A stretch of 64,000 nucleotides of DNA. It comes from Rhodosorus marinus CCMP1338 (taxonomy: Eukaryota; Plantae; Rhodophyta). This document shows, one piece after another, positions 29,315 to 47,823 of this stretch (its first letter is position 1; every line of letters starts with the position of its first letter). Both the position numbers and the translations under genes were made by a program. Location: assembly GCA_029953675.1 (NCBI GenBank), contig JAMWBK010000002.1, positions 1,426,001-1,490,000 on the forward strand, written 5' to 3'. The notes beneath the pieces are model-generated. The model was not told the DNA's origin and did not search any database. It saw nothing but the letters and a program-made list of their open reading frames with translations.

Positions 29315-32300
29315 ATGGAGGTGGGTGAGCTTCCTGAGAGACTTTCGTTTCCTCAGGAAGAGGAGAATGTTCAAAAGTATTGGGAGCGGATTGAGGCGTT
29401 TGAGAAGTCGAATGAACTGAGTAAAGGGAAGAAGGTTTTCTCGTTCTACGACGGTCCTCCTTTCGCGACTGGATTGCCCCATTATGGGCATATACTTGCG
29501 GTAAGGATTGAGCTGGTCAGATCCAGAGGTGGATGTTCTAGAAGTCGTATTTTCGCACCGGAAAGTCTGAGTTTTTGTATTCTGTGCTGTTATTTGCTGC
29601 TTGCAGGGAACGATAAAGGACGTGGTGACCAGATATGCTTACCAGACTGGCCATCATGTCGAGAGGCGGTTTGGATGGGATTGCCATGGATTGCCGAGTA
29701 AGTCGCTCTATTGTACTGCATGAGGTTTCAATGGTTACCGTCTCGCCCATGCAGAAAACATATTTAACATGCGCTTCTCCCTAAACTGCGATCAGTTGAG
29801 TTCGAGATTGAGCAGGCTTTGGGAATCAAAACGAAGGAGGACGTGCTCAAGTTCGGTATTGGAAACTACAACAAGGAGTGTCGCCAGATTGTTATGAGAT
29901 TTGCTGGAGAATGGGAGCGAATTGTGAAGCGTTTGGGAAGGTGGATCGATTTCGAGAATGACTACAAGACTCTCAGCACATCATACATGGAGAGCGTTTG
30001 GTGGGTTTTCAAGCAGCTGCACGAAAAGGGTCTCGTTTACAGGGGATTTAAGGTGAGTTTGTCCGAGGGGAAGACAATTTCACTCATTCATCAAAGTCGA
30101 GAATTTTTGAATCCTCTTTATTCCTCGTTTCGTCAGGTTATGCCGTACTCAACTGGTTGCACAACTCCGCTCTCCAACTTTGAAGCCAATCTCAACTACA
30201 AGGACGTACAAGATCCAGCTGTTACTGTTGCATTTCCCTTAAAAGACGATCCAAATACATTGCTACTGGCCTGGACTACGACGCCATGGACTCTCCCTTC
30301 CAACATGATGCTTTGTGTCAACGCGGGAATGTCGTACATTAAGATTCTCGATGAGAAGACACAGAATACATATGTTTTGGCTGAATCTAGACTCGTACAA
30401 TTGTATAAGGATCCAAAGAAGGCGAAGTTTACGGTTCTGGAAAAGTACAAGGGTAAGTTATGAGATCAATTTCATCATCTCCCGCAAATTTGGGACAGAC
30501 ACCGACAGACCTCCACACAGCTCTGACGCGGTTCCATACTCTGATGCCGGGGCAGGTTCGGATATGGTGGGTTGGAAATATGAGCCATTGTTCGACTATT
30601 TTGTACCAGAGTACGGCGATCGAGCCTTTTTCTTGGTTAGCGACGATTACGTAACTGATGACTCAGGAACAGGGATCGTTCATCAAGCGCCGGCATTCGG
30701 AGAGGATGATTACCGGGTTTGCGTTGCTGTGGGCGCTGTTGACAAGTCAGAACTGCCCTGTCCGGTTGATGAGAGCGGCCGATTCCTGGAGGTAGGAATC
30801 CAAGGACGCAACTGCTGCGCCGCTTTATCGTGGCTGTGTTTGGCGCCCTCGACCTTAGCATGATCCCAATCGTTTTCTCCTTTCTTTTCGCAGCCTGTGC
30901 ATGAATTTGTTGGAGTGTACGTGAAGGAAGCTGACAAACCCATCGTCAATGAAATCAAGAAGAAGGGAAGAATCGTGAAGAACGAGCAATTTTTCCACTC
31001 ATATCCATTCTGCTGGAGATCTGAAACGCCTCTCATCTACAAGGCAGTACCAGCATGGTTTGTTAAAGCGGAGGAGCTCAAGGACAAGTTGATAGAGAAC
31101 AACCTCAAGTCTTCATGGGTTCCCAAGTTTGTGCAGACGAACCGCTTCGGCAATTGGCTTGAGAACGTTCGGGATTGGAACGTTTCTAGGAATCGGTATT
31201 GGGGGACGCCATTGCCAATTTGGACGAACGAGGAGCACACAGAACGGCTTGTGATCGGGTCAGTAGAAGAACTGGAAAAGCTCTGTGGTAAGAGTGGTAT
31301 AACTGACATCCATAGAGAGAACATCGACGATCTGGAGATTGTGAACCCAGAAACCGGAAACGTATTGAAACGTGTGGAGGAGGTGAATTTCTTTGCTGCA
31401 CGTCCTCCGCGAGATTATCGTACTCCTGTGATTTCTTCTCACATACCGGCTTTCGTTCAATGCTACAGGTTTTCGACTGCTGGTTCGAATCTGGATCGAT
31501 GCCGTACGCTTCGATTCACTACCCTTTCACCGAAGAAGCTAGAAACTACTTTGGAAAGGCCTTCCCCGCTGATTTTATCGCTGAGGGACTGGATCAAACT
31601 CGTGGATGGTTCTACACGCTCACAGTTTTAGCGACAGCCCTTTACGACAAGCCGGCGTTTAAGAACTGTATTGTAAATGGGCTCGTCCTGGCGGAGGATG
31701 GCAAGAAAATGTCAAAACGGTTGAAGAATTATCCGGACCCTATGACGGTTGTAAACGAACATGGCTCCGATGCGTTGAGACTGTATCTGATCAACTCTCC
31801 CGTCGTTAGAGCAGAACCACTGCGCTTCAGGGAAGCAGGGGTTCGGGACGTCGTCAAGTATGAACGAGTACCCCTTCTTGACTGTCTCCACAGTTGTGCT
31901 GAAAGCAAGGAGAATTTCCGCTGAGACATTCCTCTTTGGGATTTTGTTTTTGTTTTGTCATTTCTCTCAGGGAGATAATGTTGCCCTGGTTCAATGCTTA
32001 TAGATTCTTCATCCAGAATGCCAAGCATCTGGAATTTGAAACGGGGGTATCCATCAAGGTTGGTACACACACTGCTAAGGAGATGAGCTCCCGGAACCCG
32101 ATGGACCACTGGGTCATGTCCAGTTTGGGATCGCTCATCCATTTTGTGAGGCAGGAGATGGCCGCGTATCGCTTGTTTACCGTAGTACCGAGGTTAGTCC
32201 ATTTCATCGAGGACTTGACGAATTGGTATGTACGTCTTAACAGACCGCGCTTGAAGGGTGCAATCTCACTGGATGATTGGAGAATTGGCCTTGAGAATCT

Positions 32301-33740
32301 CGCGGATGTTCTACTCGCGCTCTCTCGATTGATGGCGTCGTTTACGCCGTTTTTCTCCGAGTACACGTATCAAAACCTGAAAAGCTGTGCACCAGGTAAG
32401 CTGCATAACGAACAGTGTTTCCGACAATGTGGTTGACATCCAGACTCTCAACCGCGCTTGCTCTGTCTTTTTCATGTTGTTTACCCGACGGCGATGCCGC
32501 CTTTTCAGAGTCTCTCCAATCCGAGTCAGTGCATTTCCTAATGGTTCCAGAGCTACGAGATGATGTCGTTGATGAAACCTTCGAAGCGGCGGTGGGCAGA
32601 ATGCAAGAGGCCATTACTCTTGGTCGGGTTGCGAGGGAGCGCAGAAACGTTTCGGTCAAGCAGCCTCTATGCAAGATTACGCTGGTTCACAGAGATCAGA
32701 CTGTACTCGACAGCGTGATGTCTCTGGAATCATATGTTAAGTCCGAGTTGAACGTGCAGGAGGTCGTTTACTCGACACTCGAGTCTGAGTTTGTGGTTTT
32801 GAAAGCGGATGCAGATGGAAAGATCCTAGGGAAGAAGCTTGGGAAGAGTTTCGCGAAGGTGCACAAAGCGGTACGGAGCATGACGTCCGACCAGGTGCAG
32901 GGCCTTGAAAGAAGCGGAAGCGTAGAAATTGAAGGACACAAGATCGAAGCTTGCGATATAAGGATTACAAGAGATCTTGCCCCAAGCTTGAAGGATCAAG
33001 CGGAACATCTAGAGACGGTAAGTTTGGGACTGTGAGCAAGGGAGGGGCGAACTCGTGTCCACAACCTTACAGATCTAAAACGTTTCTGTGTTTAGGCCTT
33101 CACCGGCGGGCACAGTGGCCTTCTCGCGCTGTTGGATCTGCAGGTCGATGAGGAACTTGAGGAGCAGGGTACTTGCCGAGAAGTTGTCAACCGGGTTCAA
33201 AAACTTCGAAAACATTGTGGGTTGAACCCGAAAAATCGGATCGAGGTCTATTATGAGACGAGCGACGCAAAGCTTGGGGGTATCATAGCTCGTCGGGCAG
33301 CAGAAATAGGAAATACGTTGAAGTCTCCCCCTTTGCTAGGTGAGTATGGAGTGGATTCCGTCACTCGATGACTATCTGTCCTCAATATCATTACTTCATC
33401 GCTCGTGGTACCAACAGAACTGAAGCACCTGTCTCCCAAGGCGGTTGTTTATAGTGAGACTGAAACTATAATTGGCTCCAGTACTCTACAGCTATGCATG
33501 GTCCGTGCTGCCCCCTACCCGAGCGTGGCTAGGCTCGCTGAAACGCCTTCTGCGACAACGGACTCTGCGACGTGCGCGGCATCCTACATTCTTGCTCGAG
33601 AGTCCGGTGCACTTCACGAGTTGATGGAACAGCTGCAAACAACTAAGATCAGCATCGATGACGTTGAGTACGAGCTGAAACCAGGGTACAATGTGTTTAA
33701 GAGCAACTCTGAACGACTAGCAGCCGGAGCACCCCCATGA
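29315..33740 (+). CDS. IARS1: Cytosolic isoleucyl-tRNA synthetase; about 11 exons
   Basis: [16 protein letters not shown] (HIGH), [73 protein letters not shown] and [10 protein letters not shown], plus the eukaryotic C-terminal extension [12 protein letters not shown]. Confidence 0.98.
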
Positions 33741-34141
33741 AAGCGTCTCCTCTACTAGAGCGAAGCGGCTCTGTCACCACCTCTCTCTTTCCTATTGAAT
33801 AGTCGCTCCAGATTTGTACACCATAGAGATCTCATGCTGAACCCTTTAAAGCTTTGTTTCACATACGTCTTCTACTGTCCTTCAAATTCAGTCAGGCATC
33901 TGTACGGTCGATTCAGACAAAGGCACGAGTCTGTACGGTCGCTACTCCGAAGTTAGTTATGATCAACCCGTCCACTGTCCATCTATGAGCAAATTCACTC
34001 ACCCCGAAGCTTTCAAGAACATGACATTGTAAACCAACTCTGGACTAGCGCAGCCCTCTAGGATGTCCATACCACCCAGCAGCGCCATGTGCGCTCTCAC
34101 GCCGTGGTTTACGTTCAATTCATGACTACTCGGGTCGGAAT

Positions 34142-35332
34142 TCAGGATGCAGCTGAAATCATAAAGACAATGGGAAGGATTTCAGCCCCTATTTGATTCA
34201 ATTGAGCTTGATTCACCAAATTCATTGCTGTTTCTCTCGACTGGAAGTGAAGAGCCTTGCACCGACCTCTGCTTTCAGACAGCTGAAGTCAGTACCGATC
34301 CATACCGAACCTACCTAACGGAGTGTCTTCAGCGGCAGATCAAATGTTGGGCAACGTACGTACCAAGTCTCCATATCGTTTGCCCACAAGTGGTCCAGAA
34401 AGGTCAGGAGCCGCCTATGATCAGCCATACTGTGCGTATTTCGACAGATTTGTTTAGAGATTGCCAGCATTCTCGCTGCTGTCGTCCGGTTCTGGGGAAC
34501 ATTCCCTGCAGCGGAGACGGATTCCGCTTCTTCTTGTTCAGCCCTTCTAAGTCTCTGCACATTTATCCCAGACGGTGGGATCATTCGGAGCTCTTCCCAC
34601 GGCAGATCGAGCTGCTTCATCCATTCGTGTGTATAAACGGCTTCTTCATAACAGCCATGACTTGATGCTATTGCTACGTCGTTCTCTGCTTCCTCTTGAA
34701 ATCCTAGAGTTCGAAGCACTGTCGCACAATGCTTCGTCTCCAGTGGGTAAAACGGTACCTAAGAGAATTTCCCGAAGAGGATTCGGTGAGCTGGGCATCC
34801 AAAAACGATTTCCCGATCTGTTTGCCCAGTAGCTCACCTTGTAAGCGCGGAGTCCATTCCTGAAAAGATCTTTGTCTGTTTCTGAAAAATATATTTGCAT
34901 CATGCCTTGATCTGCTGCGGATACTACCGCGTTTCGGATCGACGACTTTTCTAGAAGTGAATCACACATTGCAAATCCACTCGGTAGGTTGGTCTTTGGA
35001 AGTCTATCTCCTACGTTTTGGAGCCAATTTCTGACAACTCTCTCCCTATCTCCCTCAACGAAGACTCTATACATGTCAAGCATTCCCAGATCATGCATTC
35101 TGGTCAGCAACCACTTGGCGACAACTTTTTTCCCAGTTCCATCTGGTCCAATAAATAAAAGCCTCTGAGGCACTCCCCTTTCACTTCCTAGCAGCGATTC
35201 CAATGCATTCACTGCCTCGGCTTGCCCAATATCAAGCAGTCGCGCACTCAGAACACATCGATTCCTCACATGTGTCCCTCGCGCCCTGCTCCGGGCCCAG
35301 TCGCCTCTCCATGGAGTTGCAAACGACGTCAT
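34142..35332 (-). CDS. Plastid-targeted clamp-loader-family AAA+ protein resembling cyanobacterial DNA polymerase III delta-prime (HolB); 3 exons
   Basis: Transit-peptide-like MTSFATPWRGDWARSRAR..RCVLSARL, then IGQAEAVNALESLL..PQRLLFIGPDGTGKKVVAKWL. The spliced junction reads LFRNGLRAYK|VPFYPL, followed by VAIASSHGCYEEA and MLAISKQI..RLLTFLDHLW. The last exon ends in TGA at 34142. Confidence 0.6.
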
Positions 35333-35777
35333 TGCGCATTAAAAAAATTCCACGAATCGCGCTCTAGACCCCCATTTTCATCAGTCTCTGTCTCCAAACT
35401 GTAACTGGCTTCACCATCCCAACCGGACGAAAAGAATAGATTCCATCTGCAAAAAGCTGATCTCATAGCTTTCAGTGAGAGCTCGAACCATTGCCTACGG
35501 CTTAGGTTTGGCTCAGTAGTTACTAACTGTACGTTTGCATTAGAAGCGTTTTTGTTTACCCTTCGGTCGTCTGAAAAGACTTTTAAGGACATCAGCTAGG
35601 ACACTACTGATCTACATGTAGATCCATAGAATCTAGCAGCCTGTTGTGACCGCGGAACGCGTGGACATCTATCTGTTAAGCGGGCGTCGAGCTACAAGGA
35701 AACCCCTTCGAACCTGGCGTTCAGTATGGACAAAGTGAAGCTGGAGACAACGTCAAAAGACAAAACGTTGGTGCGCT

Positions 35778-35961
35778 CGCGTAAGTGGTGAAATCAATAT
35801 ACTGAAAGCTACCTCTCCTCCCAGGAACAAACAAAGAAATCACAAGGTAGCCACAAACTCAACCAAGCACGCGTAGGTGGTGAAATCAATATACTGAAAG
35901 CTACCTCTCCTCCCAGGAACAAACAAAGAAATCACAAGGTAGCCACAAACTCAACCAAGCA
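35778..35961. repeat. Near-perfect 92-bp tandem duplication (2 copies, 1 mismatch)
   Basis: cgcgta(a/g)gtggtgaaatcaatatactgaaagc...aactcaaccaagca at 35778-35869 and 35870-35961. Confidence 0.95.
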
Positions 35962-36487
35962 CCAAACCCCCAGCCCTCCTCTTCCTCATCAAAAACGATC
36001 TGGATCGGGGGGGCCATTGCGCGACCTAGACTGCCAAATACAAGCCACTATGAACCTTGACCAGTAGGCAATCCCTATAGAGGGCTGTCCCCTAAGACTA
36101 GCTCCCTGAGCAGTATCTGAGAGCCTGGACCAAGCCAAAAGAACTTAACAGCCTCCACCCCTCCCTCCGCAATCCAATCTCACAGGAGTCGGACTACTCT
36201 TCGTAACAACAAAACAGCCTCTGCAAGGTATACTCAGGTAAGCAAGCACCTTTTGCCCCCTTTTCACCTTTTTTCGACTAAATCTAGTAGGCACAGAAGC
36301 TAAAATTAAGGAAATCCAAGAAATACTCAATACTCCGAGATAGAGCCAAAACGGAATATAGCCCATTCTTCAAAGATAGGACGCTATCAAATCTGTCCAG
36401 AAGGGGATCAGTACTAAATGCTCCAAATACTCCTCTCCTAGTTCCTAAAACGACAACCCTTGTCACTCAGCAACTCTCAAATCGTGC

Positions 36488-37514
36488 AAAAACTCGCCTT
36501 CCCTATAAAAAATCCCATTTTTTCCCTCTTTTCGACTCGTTTGCCTCGAAAAAAATCGTTCATCAGGAAAAGTCGCTTCGTCTCGTCCTTGTCTCCTCTG
36601 GATCTGAAAAATCGCCTCCTCTCGTCTCGTTTGCGTCGAAAAACGTTGAGAATCGCTGGAAACGATGCGATTTAGTAGTGAACGTTCGCCTCGTTTCTTC
36701 TCGTTCGCGTTGAAAAAGCCTTCACCGAGTCCGATGCTTCGGGAAATGTGGCTCCCGCGCGATCAAATCGGTGAAAACCGTGTTGCAGGGTATGTAACCT
36801 GGGTAGCGCGATTTTGCCCATTTTTGCCCCTTCAAACTACATATTTAGTAGTGAAGAGAGTGTGAAAAACTATAGATATACAAAATGATGTAAATGACCG
36901 AAATGACGAAAAAGGTGTCTTTTTGATATTTGATCACTTCCACTTTTCATGCTGCGAGCTCGAAACTCTCGAAAGCAAGCAGCCCAGTAACCCCAGACAT
37001 AGCCAAATCTTGGTCACTTTTCGCCCAATATGGCGGTGATTGGTCAACTCCAGTAGGGAAAGTTGTCGAAGTTTGCAAAAAATAGTTGAAAAAGCCGTGT
37101 ATGTACCGGATAAACCCGCGTTTTCGAAAGAAATGTGCCCTCTTCTGAAGAATCTAGTAGGGAAGGGATAAGTCTGAATCATTAGTGAAGAGACCCTGCG
37201 AAGCAATATTTATCCAGCTGCTTCTCCTCACTTTGCCCGCTCTCGACCCAAGGAGCGTCAGCGAAAGCTCATAACTTCGCGCTGGTAAGTGGTGAAGCTC
37301 GCGCTGGTATTTGTTGAAGCTCGCGCTGGTATTTGTTGAAGCTCGCGCTGGTAGGTGTTGAACCTAGCGCTGGTAGGTGTTGAACCTCGCGCTGGTAGGT
37401 GTTGAACCTCGCGCTGGCAGGTGTTGAACCTCGCGCTGGTAGGTGTCTGTATCTGAAAAGCTCGCCTTCCCAATAAAAAAATCCCTTTTTTTCCCTCTTT
37501 TCGCCTCGTTTGCC
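36488..37514. repeat. Dispersed ~58-bp direct repeat pair flanking a ~0.9-kb non-coding block
   Basis: aaaa(a/g)ctcgccttccc.ataaaaaatccc.tttttccctcttttcg.ctcgtttgcc at about 36488-36545 and 37456-37514. Confidence 0.85.
37276..37446. repeat. 22-bp minisatellite, about 7.8 copies
   Basis: Unit ctcgcgctggtaggtgttgaac, with variants gtatttgttgaag and gtaagtggtgaag. Units start at 37276, 37298, 37320, 37342, 37364, 37386, 37408 and 37430. Confidence 0.97.
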
Positions 37515-46282: not shown

Positions 46283-47823
46283 ATGGAATCAAGACGAGAC
46301 CAGATTGTGAAGGCATTGAGAGGCGATGGTGTGGAAGCTTGCAAGAGGTTTCTGAGCAGTTCCAGTGATGCTGGTGACGGTCCCTCTCTCTTGATCGTTG
46401 GCGATGATGCACGTGAGGTTGTGCGAATCTCGACCAAGGCCGTCGTCCTCGTCCTTCGCTTTTCATGTTTGCGCAGCGGCTTGGGAGAGGAGTTTGCGGA
46501 AGTTTGGGATGAACGGAAGGAGACAGTAATTGTTGAGGACCTGGATCAACTGCAGGAAGTATCGTCGAAGAACTTGTTGACCGCTTTGATTGGGAATAAG
46601 CTTGATGAAGCTCGTCTGAGACCTGAGCTGCCACCAAAAATCGTCGGCGTAGCGTCCGAGTTGTCAAAGGTTCCGCCTCCACTTCTTCGGAGCGGAAGGT
46701 TTGACTATATCGTCGACCTCACTGCACCCCCCGACCTGAACTCGCGTAGGAAGGCTTTCCAAGTACTGACAACGAGCATTTGCGCGGAAGAACTTGCCAC
46801 ACTTACTCCGGGGTATTCATCCAAGGACTTCTTCCGCCTGATTCATGAGCTCGGGGTAGAAAGACTTAACGAGAACCGACTGTCTTTGCAAGCCATCCCA
46901 CCTCCTCGACAACTGCTTGTTTCTGAAAGCAGGAAAGTGTACGGATGGGATGTTATCGCCGGGTATGATGAGGAGAAGCAGGCGGTTCGCCGAGCTCTGG
47001 AGTGGCCCTTCGTCCACTCTGACACGCTCTCGTCACTTGGCGTTAAGCCTGTGGGTGGGATTCTACTGCATGGACCATCTGGCTGTGGGAAATCACTGAT
47101 GGCGAACGCTGCCGGAGCAGAGCTTCTCCTGGCCAACTTCATCCACGTCAAGCCTTCCAGCCTTCTCTCAAAGTATTTGGGGGATACCGAAGCAAGAATT
47201 CGATCCCTGTTCGCGCGAGCGAGAGCCATGCTTCCTTGCGTCATCTTCATAGACGAAATCGACTCGCTTTGCCGCAAACGTGAGTAGTAAGGTCCAGAAA
47301 CGTAGCAGGACCGGCGTAACGGCGAAGAGGTCAAAGCTTAGGGAATCGCTTGCTTCTCTTGTTCCCAGGCGATTCCGATGAAGAGTTCAACCTAGACCGA
47401 CGTATCATCGGATCTCTCTTGACAGAGTTGGATGGCATCGCTGGATCTAGAAGAGCGTTTATTCTGGCCTGCACGAATCGATTCGACCTAATTGACCCTG
47501 CTCTTCTGCGTCCAGGGCGAATCGATCAGCTGCTTGAGATTCCAATGCCAGGCTTCAAAAACAGGAAAGCAGTTCTGAAGCACCACGCGTCCCGATTGGG
47601 CTTCGATGATGACCTTCTCCACAATATCTCGCAGGCGACGGCGGGGGCATCATGCGCCACACTGCAATCCATAATGAGGCAGACTGCCATGAACAGCCTG
47701 AGAGATTCATCGGCTGGGGTTGCGCAGAAGGTCACCTTGGATCACCTGAACAAGTCGTTGACTTCTCACAATTTCTTTTCCTTTAATCGGAACTTGTTTC
47801 CTGGCGCCGGGCTTCGGGAATGA
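46283..47823 (+). CDS. CDC48-clade AAA+ ATPase (AFG2/SPATA5-like) with degenerate D1 and intact D2; 2 exons
   Basis: D2 has WDVIAG..ALEWP, GILLHGPSGCGKS, SKYLGDTE, IFIDEID, LLTELDG and TNRFDLIDPALLRPGRID. D1 keeps LLRSGRFD but lacks a Walker A motif. Confidence 0.85.

Follow-up and report, generated by a model that had tools for sequence, protein, structure and literature searches.

A degenerate nuclear gene of the red alga Rhodosorus marinus, very probably descended from the delta-prime subunit of cyanobacterial DNA polymerase III

Results

Structure and expression of NDN08_007758

The gene NDN08_007758 of the red alga Rhodosorus marinus CCMP1338 lies on the minus strand of a 64,000-nucleotide (nt) stretch of contig JAMWBK010000002.1 (assembly GCA_029953675.1, positions 1,426,001 to 1,490,000), hereafter called the window, to which all coordinates refer. 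The assembly is that of Lee et al. 2023 (PMC10250338) for CCMP1338. An earlier note, made from the letters of the window, had described positions 34142-35332 as a nuclear-encoded, plastid-targeted relative of HolB, the delta-prime subunit of the DNA polymerase III (Pol III) clamp loader. NDN08_007758 is a nuclear gene of four exons encoding 360 amino acids (aa), and the evidence presented below makes it very probable that its product descends from a delta-prime of the cyanobacterial type. The spliced product is 100% identical to the NCBI protein KAJ8907649.1 (P0001), labelled 'hypothetical protein' by NCBI; the UniRef label is 'ATPase AAA-type core domain-containing protein'. The parts of the gene are the following.

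33888..35332, minus strand: whole coding sequence; its spliced translation equals KAJ8907649.1 exactly, and the exon structure is also implied by an open reading frame (ORF) from an MMETSP transcript
34838..35332, minus strand: exon 1, residues 1-165; ends LFRNGLRAYK, then GTGAGC
34759..34837, minus strand: intron 1, 79 nt, GT..AG; interrupts LFRNGLRAYK/VPFYPL and is missing from the homologue found in SRR22824290 (see below)
34364..34758, minus strand: exon 2, residue 166 to the first two bases of codon 297
34153..34363, minus strand: intron 2, 211 nt, donor TG|GTACGT, phase 2; same position and phase in the SRR22824290 homologue
34003..34152, minus strand: exon 3, residues 297-347 in part; the part past 34142 had been overlooked in the earlier note
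33931..34002, minus strand: intron 3, 72 nt
33888..33930, minus strand: exon 4, LVPLSESTVQMPD plus stop

The ORF begins at 35332 and the protein with MTSFATPW. Both the gene model and the start codon are supported by the MMETSP transcript, which derives from a related strain or species: its ORF (P0002; 361 aa, flagged 'type:complete') is 85-86% identical to the NDN08_007758 product and runs uninterrupted over all three splice sites. Since the NCBI protein and this independent ORF both continue over the junction, the splice of intron 1 is real. The transcript-derived ORF also means that the family is expressed. In the 90% cluster of the MMETSP transcript there are also two JGI/IMG proteins, 315 and 340 aa long and encoded on contigs of ~5.5 kb, besides a transcript isoform of 368 aa (P0138); hence, a second genomic copy, from a related strain, exists in public data.

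The motifs quoted in the earlier note are present in the minus-strand reading of 34142-35332 (DIGQAEAVNALESLL...RLLFIGPDGTGKK, LFRNGLRAYK|VPFYPL and ...MLAISKQICRNTHSMADHRRLLTFLDHLW), and its statement that the gene is nuclear-encoded is borne out by spliceosomal introns and by eukaryotic neighbour genes. Its 3' boundary was 254 nt off, as the coding sequence reaches 33888 and not 34142. The ~63 C-terminal residues that were overlooked include the block ASPELVYNVMFL, which aligns to the conserved C-terminus of cyanobacterial delta-prime, AQPRLVWEVTLL.

A family of two lineages

HMMER against 1.84 billion representative proteins recovered one further member, the homologue from SRR22824290 (P0003; E 2e-35), the other matches being only P-loops of giant multi-AAA proteins. 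It is encoded on a 1.7-kb genomic Logan contig (L001, 1-1716) flanked by (GA)n and (GT)n microsatellites. The database version of this protein begins with a GTG codon and runs on through an intron; once corrected, the product is ~343-350 aa long, and its respliced C-terminus aligns to Rhodosorus exon 3. The contig is without intron 1. The intron common to both lineages lies in phase 2 within the Cys codon that follows NDM(E)T (TG|GTACGT). No further members were found in a word-indexed search with the family alignment, and no family member in two JGI metagenome scans.

The two lineages are 33% identical overall. Invariant between them are the motifs GQ..A...L, P.R.LF.GP.GTGK, Y.VF..G.R.R.VR.W, YKVPFYPL, AIAS..GCYEE, PW..LR, FLDHLW.NDM and AH.AL...D.L...A.P..V..V.FL. 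Between the NDN08_007758 product and its MMETSP homologue, identity is 91% in the P-loop block, 92% in the lid, 88% in the 'degenerate' middle and 85% in the collar, falling to 70% in the N-terminal extension, 69% in the linker and 71% in the tail. Such a pattern indicates a folded, constrained protein with a presequence that evolves faster.

Homology to cyanobacterial delta-prime

All three members, with the SRR22824290 homologue respliced beforehand, were scanned against 18,950 NCBIfam models. The best and only significant match of each was NF005638/PRK07399 (E 4e-7, 1e-7 and 1e-6), the model on which genuine Nostocaceae and Geitlerinema delta-primes reach 461 and 434 bits; E. coli HolB prefers PRK07993. 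Each of the PRK07399 matches falls into two colinear parts: residues 35-79 (P-loop) lie against model positions 10-53, and residues 162-214 (lid) against 179-232.

For alignment of profiles, 120 real cyanobacterial delta-primes were retrieved, of which 40 were aligned for hhalign. The retrieval bait was a hand-typed approximate consensus, used for retrieval only; the returned database sequences, 72-78% identical to the bait, serve all later analyses. The three-member family matched the 40 delta-primes with a probability of 97.5%, E 5.2e-12 and a score of 89.6 over 266 columns, against 15.9 for the reversed family alignment and 11-21 (best 21.2) for 20 column shuffles. In this alignment, family residues 30-346 lie against nearly the whole of delta-prime, with N-domain, lid and C-terminal domain colinear. 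By segment, residues 30-85 gave E 3e-8 and residues 151-225 gave E 1e-7. The C-terminal third was weak (E 0.009-0.03) and colinear in position, with MLAISKQI..LLTFLDHLW opposite ALELARQI..WLVDYLQH.YW besides the terminal block named above. Residues 86-150 alone had no similarity to cyanobacterial delta-prime. The blocks so delimited are listed here together with their confidence in the AlphaFold2 (AF2) model described below, given as the predicted local distance difference test (pLDDT).

35246..35332, minus strand: N-terminal extension, residues 1-29 (MTSFATPWRGDWARSRARGTHVRNRCVLS), presumed organelle-targeting presequence; the hhalign match sets in after it, at residue 30 against delta-prime residue 4
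35078..35245, minus strand: block 1, residues 30-85, with the IGQ..AV..L helix, strand beta1, Walker A GPDGTGKK (35126-35149) and the next helix; hhalign E 3e-8, AF2 pLDDT 73-87
34883..35077, minus strand: degenerate middle, residues 86-150, in place of ~120 delta-prime residues, without Walker B and the NxLLKTLEEP helix; AF2 pLDDT below 50 for residues 93-129
34579..34882, minus strand: block 2, residues 151-225, over intron 1, with a sensor-1-like strand, the remnant L-R162-A of the Ser-Arg-Cys (SRC) site, the KVPFYPL strand and the lid; hhalign E 1e-7, AF2 pLDDT 80-91
34005..34491, minus strand: C-terminal helical collar-like domain, residues 255-346, over intron 2, MLAISKQI..LLTFLDHLWANDM ... 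ASPELVYNVMFL; AF2 helices with pLDDT ~80

The lid of block 2 reads VLRTLGF...AIASSHGCYEEAV...PWEELRMIPP. The family resembles cyanobacterial delta-prime both in length (~330 mature residues against a median of 320) and in the order of its blocks, which runs F..IGQ..AV..L, LF.GP.G.G(K/R), a strand with (S)R(C)..(I/V)PFY.L, VL..TG, AIA.G..(G)EA(I/V), W..L..IPP, A..(L)A.QI, L.D.L and A.P.LV..V..L. It differs in that the Rhodosorus gene is nuclear, split by introns and provided with an N-terminal extension.

Other clamp-loader subunits matched far less of the protein. In hhalign, E. coli HolB had no similarity to the family profile, and E. coli gamma matched only residues 34-79 (E 1.5e-4). The DnaX models TIGR02397 and PRK14950 matched residues 35-76 at E 0.001-0.09, with nothing past the P-loop; the RFC model PRK12402 matched residues 31-81 only (E 0.003-0.005), and RFC chains of the PDB gave E 0.16-1.2 inside residues 33-106. 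The remaining delta-prime, DnaX and RFC models of NCBIfam either matched the P-loop only, at E >= 0.001, or had no match. Pfam returned only sub-threshold generic AAA matches for all three members. PDB sequence searches with the single protein and with the family profile gave nothing significant, the best being the P-loop of ClpB at E 0.018. The HolB-like character proposed in the earlier note thus holds in a narrower form: the protein is a homologue specifically of the cyanobacterial-type delta-prime, and not of RFC, DnaX or the proteobacterial HolB. A grouping with RFC, which that note had named as speaking against its proposal, is contrary to these profile comparisons.

Structure model

AF2 was uninformative on the two-sequence Rhodosorus-type alignment (pLDDT 33.6). 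On an alignment containing delta-prime sequences, it gave a predicted template modelling (pTM) score of 0.60 and a mean pLDDT of 64.5. Confidence is high in this model for the P-loop module (residues 31-90), for the lid (161-225, pLDDT 80-91) and for the helices at the C-terminus; residues 93-129 stay below 50, and the core has only 4 strands. All of the 50 best PDB fold matches found by Foldseek are subunits of clamp loaders (E. coli gamma, RFC, T4 gp44), at low TM-scores of 0.35-0.45. The predicted three-domain fold is shared with E. coli delta-prime (HolB, PRK07993) and gamma (DnaX), which provide the best matches (e.g. 3GLF and 8GIZ), although the TM-scores with these chains are only 0.35-0.40, HolB is without detectable sequence similarity and gamma is similar in the P-loop only. 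The RFC small subunits of eukaryotes and archaea are part of the same AAA+ clamp-loader clade, with a weakly similar P-loop; the family has no RFC-box, Walker B or SRC conservation, and its matches to them stay within residues ~31-81 (up to residue 106 for RFC3), with E between 0.003 and 1.

Kept and lost motifs

A Walker A motif of the GxxGxGK[ST] pattern is found in canonical form in the SRR22824290 homologue (GPEGTGKS), against GPDGTGKK in Rhodosorus, where the lysine is kept and a K stands for S/T. A Walker B motif (hhhhDE) is absent, since no acidic pair behind a hydrophobic strand is shared by the three members; at the positions of Rhodosorus E93 and D95, the SRR22824290 homologue has R and A. 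The family has ~55 residues fewer than delta-prime in the stretch from the P-loop helix to the SRC region. In the delta-prime alignment, both the strand at the Walker B position (VVVLEQAETM) and the AAANxLLKTLEEPG helix are without counterpart. The loss of Walker B had been called in the earlier note, and the strand is indeed gone, but the loss was understated, since it takes in ~55 residues including the NxLLKTLEEP helix.

The arginine finger, which the same note considered kept, fares differently in the two lineages. Ser-Arg-Cys is present in 119 of the 120 cyanobacterial delta-primes; L-R162-A stands for it in Rhodosorus, with the arginine aligned, while the SRR22824290 homologue has F-A-G (in FAGYK) and has lost the arginine. 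Its retention is therefore a property of the Rhodosorus protein and no family-wide feature. As for the zinc module, its supposed loss is moot, because the 120 retrieved cyanobacterial delta-primes are also without the four-cysteine module; its absence is no derived loss.

The N-terminal extension

The N-terminal extension proposed earlier does exist: the homologous part sets in only at residue 30, aligned with residue 4 of delta-prime. Its 29 residues carry a net charge of +5, six arginines, six serines or threonines and a phenylalanine at position 4 (F4), and have no bacterial counterpart. The F4 motif is kept between the Rhodosorus protein (MTSFATP) and the MMETSP homologue (MLSFATP). An N-proximal phenylalanine is typical of red-algal and glaucophyte transit peptides. 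On a reading of the sequence, the extension has the features of the red-algal type: it is basic, hydroxylated and aromatic near the N-terminus. We consider it likely that the product is targeted to an organelle, and, with somewhat less assurance, that this organelle would be the plastid.

Surroundings of the gene

The neighbours of NDN08_007758 are a converging isoleucyl-tRNA synthetase (IleRS) gene and genes for a NAP histone chaperone, an apyrase, an ABC1 kinase and a PHO4 transporter. The IleRS gene (PF00133 plus a DUF5915 C-terminal domain, several exons) occupies ~29800-33740 on the plus strand. Its stop codon and that of NDN08_007758 are ~150 bp apart, and the 3' untranslated regions probably overlap.

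Upstream, an ORF of 87 codons (35329-35592, minus strand) has a TGA that overlaps the ATG of NDN08_007758 (ATGA). It may be an upstream ORF of the 5' leader or a chance ORF; because the related transcript ORF is flagged complete, it is no unrecognised N-terminal exon. A 92-bp unit in near-perfect direct duplication (2.0 copies, 98% match) at 35778-35962, ~450 bp upstream of the start codon, may lie in the promoter or 5' region of the gene. Between NDN08_007758 and the NAP gene, a 22-bp tandem array (AACCTCGCGCTGGTAGGTGTTG; 7.9 copies, 92% match, 37273-37446) gives rise to repetitive pseudo-ORFs (…ARFNTYQREVQHLPARGSTPTSARF…). Finally, a canonical AAA domain (PF00004, E 4e-25) is found on an ORF fragment at 46283-47287 of the plus strand; this fragment, unrelated to NDN08_007758, probably belongs as an exon to a gene for an ATPase of the FtsH, CDC48 or katanin type.

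Discussion

The homology described above leaves us with high confidence that NDN08_007758 descends from a delta-prime (HolB) gene of the cyanobacterial type. As to what has become of it, the explanation that we favour, with moderate confidence, is that the gene is a nuclear-encoded, expressed descendant of the delta-prime of the plastid ancestor's Pol III, whose product would now be an ATPase-dead structural protein of an organelle. The delta-prime gene would have moved from the cyanobacterial plastid ancestor to the nucleus, where it would have gained introns and a short presequence while keeping the three-part clamp-loader layout of P-loop N-domain, lid and helical collar. Bacterial delta-prime is already a non-hydrolysing stator. 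Given the loss of ~55 residues of the AAA+ core and an unconserved Ser-Arg-Cys, the protein can be no ATP-driven motor and would probably not donate an arginine finger as bacterial delta-prime does. Once in the organelle, probably the plastid, it may serve as a non-catalytic structural or adaptor subunit, possibly one that binds nucleotide, and its collar and lid surfaces would bind a partner in organellar DNA replication or maintenance; the targeting, the nucleotide binding, the partner and the role are inferred.

Several observations weigh against this explanation. The PRK07399 bit scores of the three members (29.4, 31.2 and 28.0) do not reach the curated cut-off of 230. The missing core is the best-conserved part among all clamp-loader subunits, and the arginine of the SRC position is lost in the SRR22824290 homologue. 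The Walker A motif is unexpected for a simple relic: GxGR is found in 114 of the 120 cyanobacterial delta-primes and GK in 6 of them, while the family has GTGK(K/S). Because delta-prime sequences steered the AF2 model, the fold match is partly circular and amounts to compatibility, not to independent proof. The case for targeting is drawn entirely from the N-terminus. The family is very rare, being found in two lineages only, and is no general component of red-algal replication. Furthermore, the protein has no known partner; neither tau/gamma nor beta is reported in red algae (bioRxiv 10.64898/2026.05.23.727376).

It is possible, though we hold it less probable, that the delta-prime scaffold has been put to an unrelated role and the protein is a repurposed orphan, e.g. 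an adaptor or regulator that binds nucleotide, in the nucleoids of plastids or mitochondria or in some other complex. The core motifs of a clamp loader are gone while new family motifs are strictly kept (YKVPFYPL, GCYEE, FLDHLWxNDM, PW..LR), and the canonical Walker A lysine stands where cyanobacterial delta-prime has GxGR. The restricted distribution of the family, and the 88% conservation that even the degenerate middle retains between strains, fit such a role as well. However, there is no positive sign of another function, and no domain besides the AAA+/clamp-loader-like one was detected.

A working stator is unlikely. Here, the protein would occupy the delta-prime position of a residual plastid clamp-loader pentamer, next to alpha and to highly diverged tau/gamma, delta and beta. 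The collar mediates pentamer assembly in known clamp loaders, and the family protein is full-length and colinear with delta-prime, collar included; in Rhodosorus, R162 is also found at the position of the SRC arginine. Pol III alpha is present in red algae, and the strict thresholds of the study that reports it (tau/gamma E <= 1e-25, Pfam gathering cut-offs) would miss a divergence such as that seen here, so that diverged partners may have been missed too (bioRxiv 10.64898/2026.05.23.727376). Against this stand the SRC arginine that the SRR22824290 homologue has not kept, the deletion of the NxLLKTLEEP helix and the Walker B strand, the tau/gamma and beta subunits that the same preprint did not find in red algae, and the absence of the family from almost every red alga covered by a collection of 15 billion proteins. 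That the SRC finger and the central helix are dispensable in the family speaks against a conventional gamma3-delta-delta-prime machine, and a genuine clamp-loader function of the NDN08_007758 product is improbable.

Equally, we give a low probability to a mitochondrial instead of a plastid location. A short (29 aa), arginine-rich extension with a net charge of +5 fits a mitochondrial presequence too. R. marinus has minicircular mitochondrial genomes and an altered inventory of genes for DNA replication, recombination and repair; minicircles and an unusual set of such genes are described for the Stylonematophyceae (PMC10250338). The cyanobacterial ancestry of the protein speaks otherwise, as does the F4 of MTSFATP, which fits the phenylalanine motif of red-algal and glaucophyte transit peptides and is kept in the MMETSP homologue.

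An origin from DnaX (gamma/tau) or from eukaryotic RFC is very unlikely. The GP.GTGK(S/K) Walker A of the family is closer to that of the active subunits than is the one of cyanobacterial delta-prime, E. coli gamma chains and RFC small subunits top the Foldseek ranking, and the P-loop region of E. coli gamma matches at E 1.5e-4. Yet GK also occurs in 6 of the 120 cyanobacterial delta-primes, and the fold ranking cannot discriminate, because the PDB is without a cyanobacterial delta-prime. All the DnaX and RFC matches cover only residues ~31-81 (to 106 for RFC3) at E 0.001 to 1, whereas the lid and C-terminal blocks match cyanobacterial delta-prime only, and the mature length of ~330 aa equals that of delta-prime. 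Least credible of all is a chance or generic P-loop match of a lineage-specific AAA-like orphan: nothing lies above the Pfam threshold and HMMER against the 1.84 billion proteins recovers no delta-prime at E < 1e-3, but a second block independent of the P-loop (E 1e-7), colinearity over 266 columns, the choice of the same single model of 18,950 by each of the three members and, above all, shuffled or reversed controls of at most 21.2 against 89.6 effectively refute it.

Before 2026, primary plastids were believed to have lost the bacterial Pol III replisome. In the classical view, algal organelle DNA is replicated by POP-type polymerases without Pol III (PMC8227023, PMC4166229, PMC6523293). 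[quoted passage not shown] The same work finds tau/gamma in green algae and cryptophyte plastids and 'missing' in red algae, beta only in Pyrenomonadales, epsilon in some Archaeplastida, and the full set in no archaeplastid. Its screen covered alpha, beta, tau/gamma and epsilon; delta and delta-prime were not searched, and its text is without Rhodosorus. Our literature search found no paper that describes holB or delta-prime from plastids or algae.

Like the plastid-targeted Pol III subunits of Archaeplastida and cryptophytes, the NDN08_007758 product is a nuclear-encoded remnant of the replisome of cyanobacteria that carries an N-terminal extension, in this case from a red alga. Unlike them, it is degenerate, while they are well conserved and pass strict thresholds of hidden Markov models (HMMs). 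NDN08_007758 is thus an unusually degenerate further relic of an already known replisome survival, and not a new kind of system.

The favoured explanation has consequences for how such survivals are mapped. A delta-prime descendant would be a fifth subunit type among the Pol III survivors, and it gives an ancestry to a gene labelled only hypothetical. Since relics of this kind can escape HMM screens at gathering thresholds, present maps of presence and absence are probably incomplete. It is doubtful that Rhodosorus, perhaps together with other early-branching mesophilic red algae, houses a cryptic plastid Pol III-type clamp and loader with all subunits diverged past HMM thresholds, or that the scaffold was recruited to the unusual organellar DNA maintenance of Stylonematophyceae; if the cryptic clamp system were true, the NDN08_007758 product would be its first visible piece. 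As a descendant of delta-prime, the family would offer a natural experiment on the fate of a clamp-loader stator once the clamp, the motor subunits and its own arginine finger have become dispensable.

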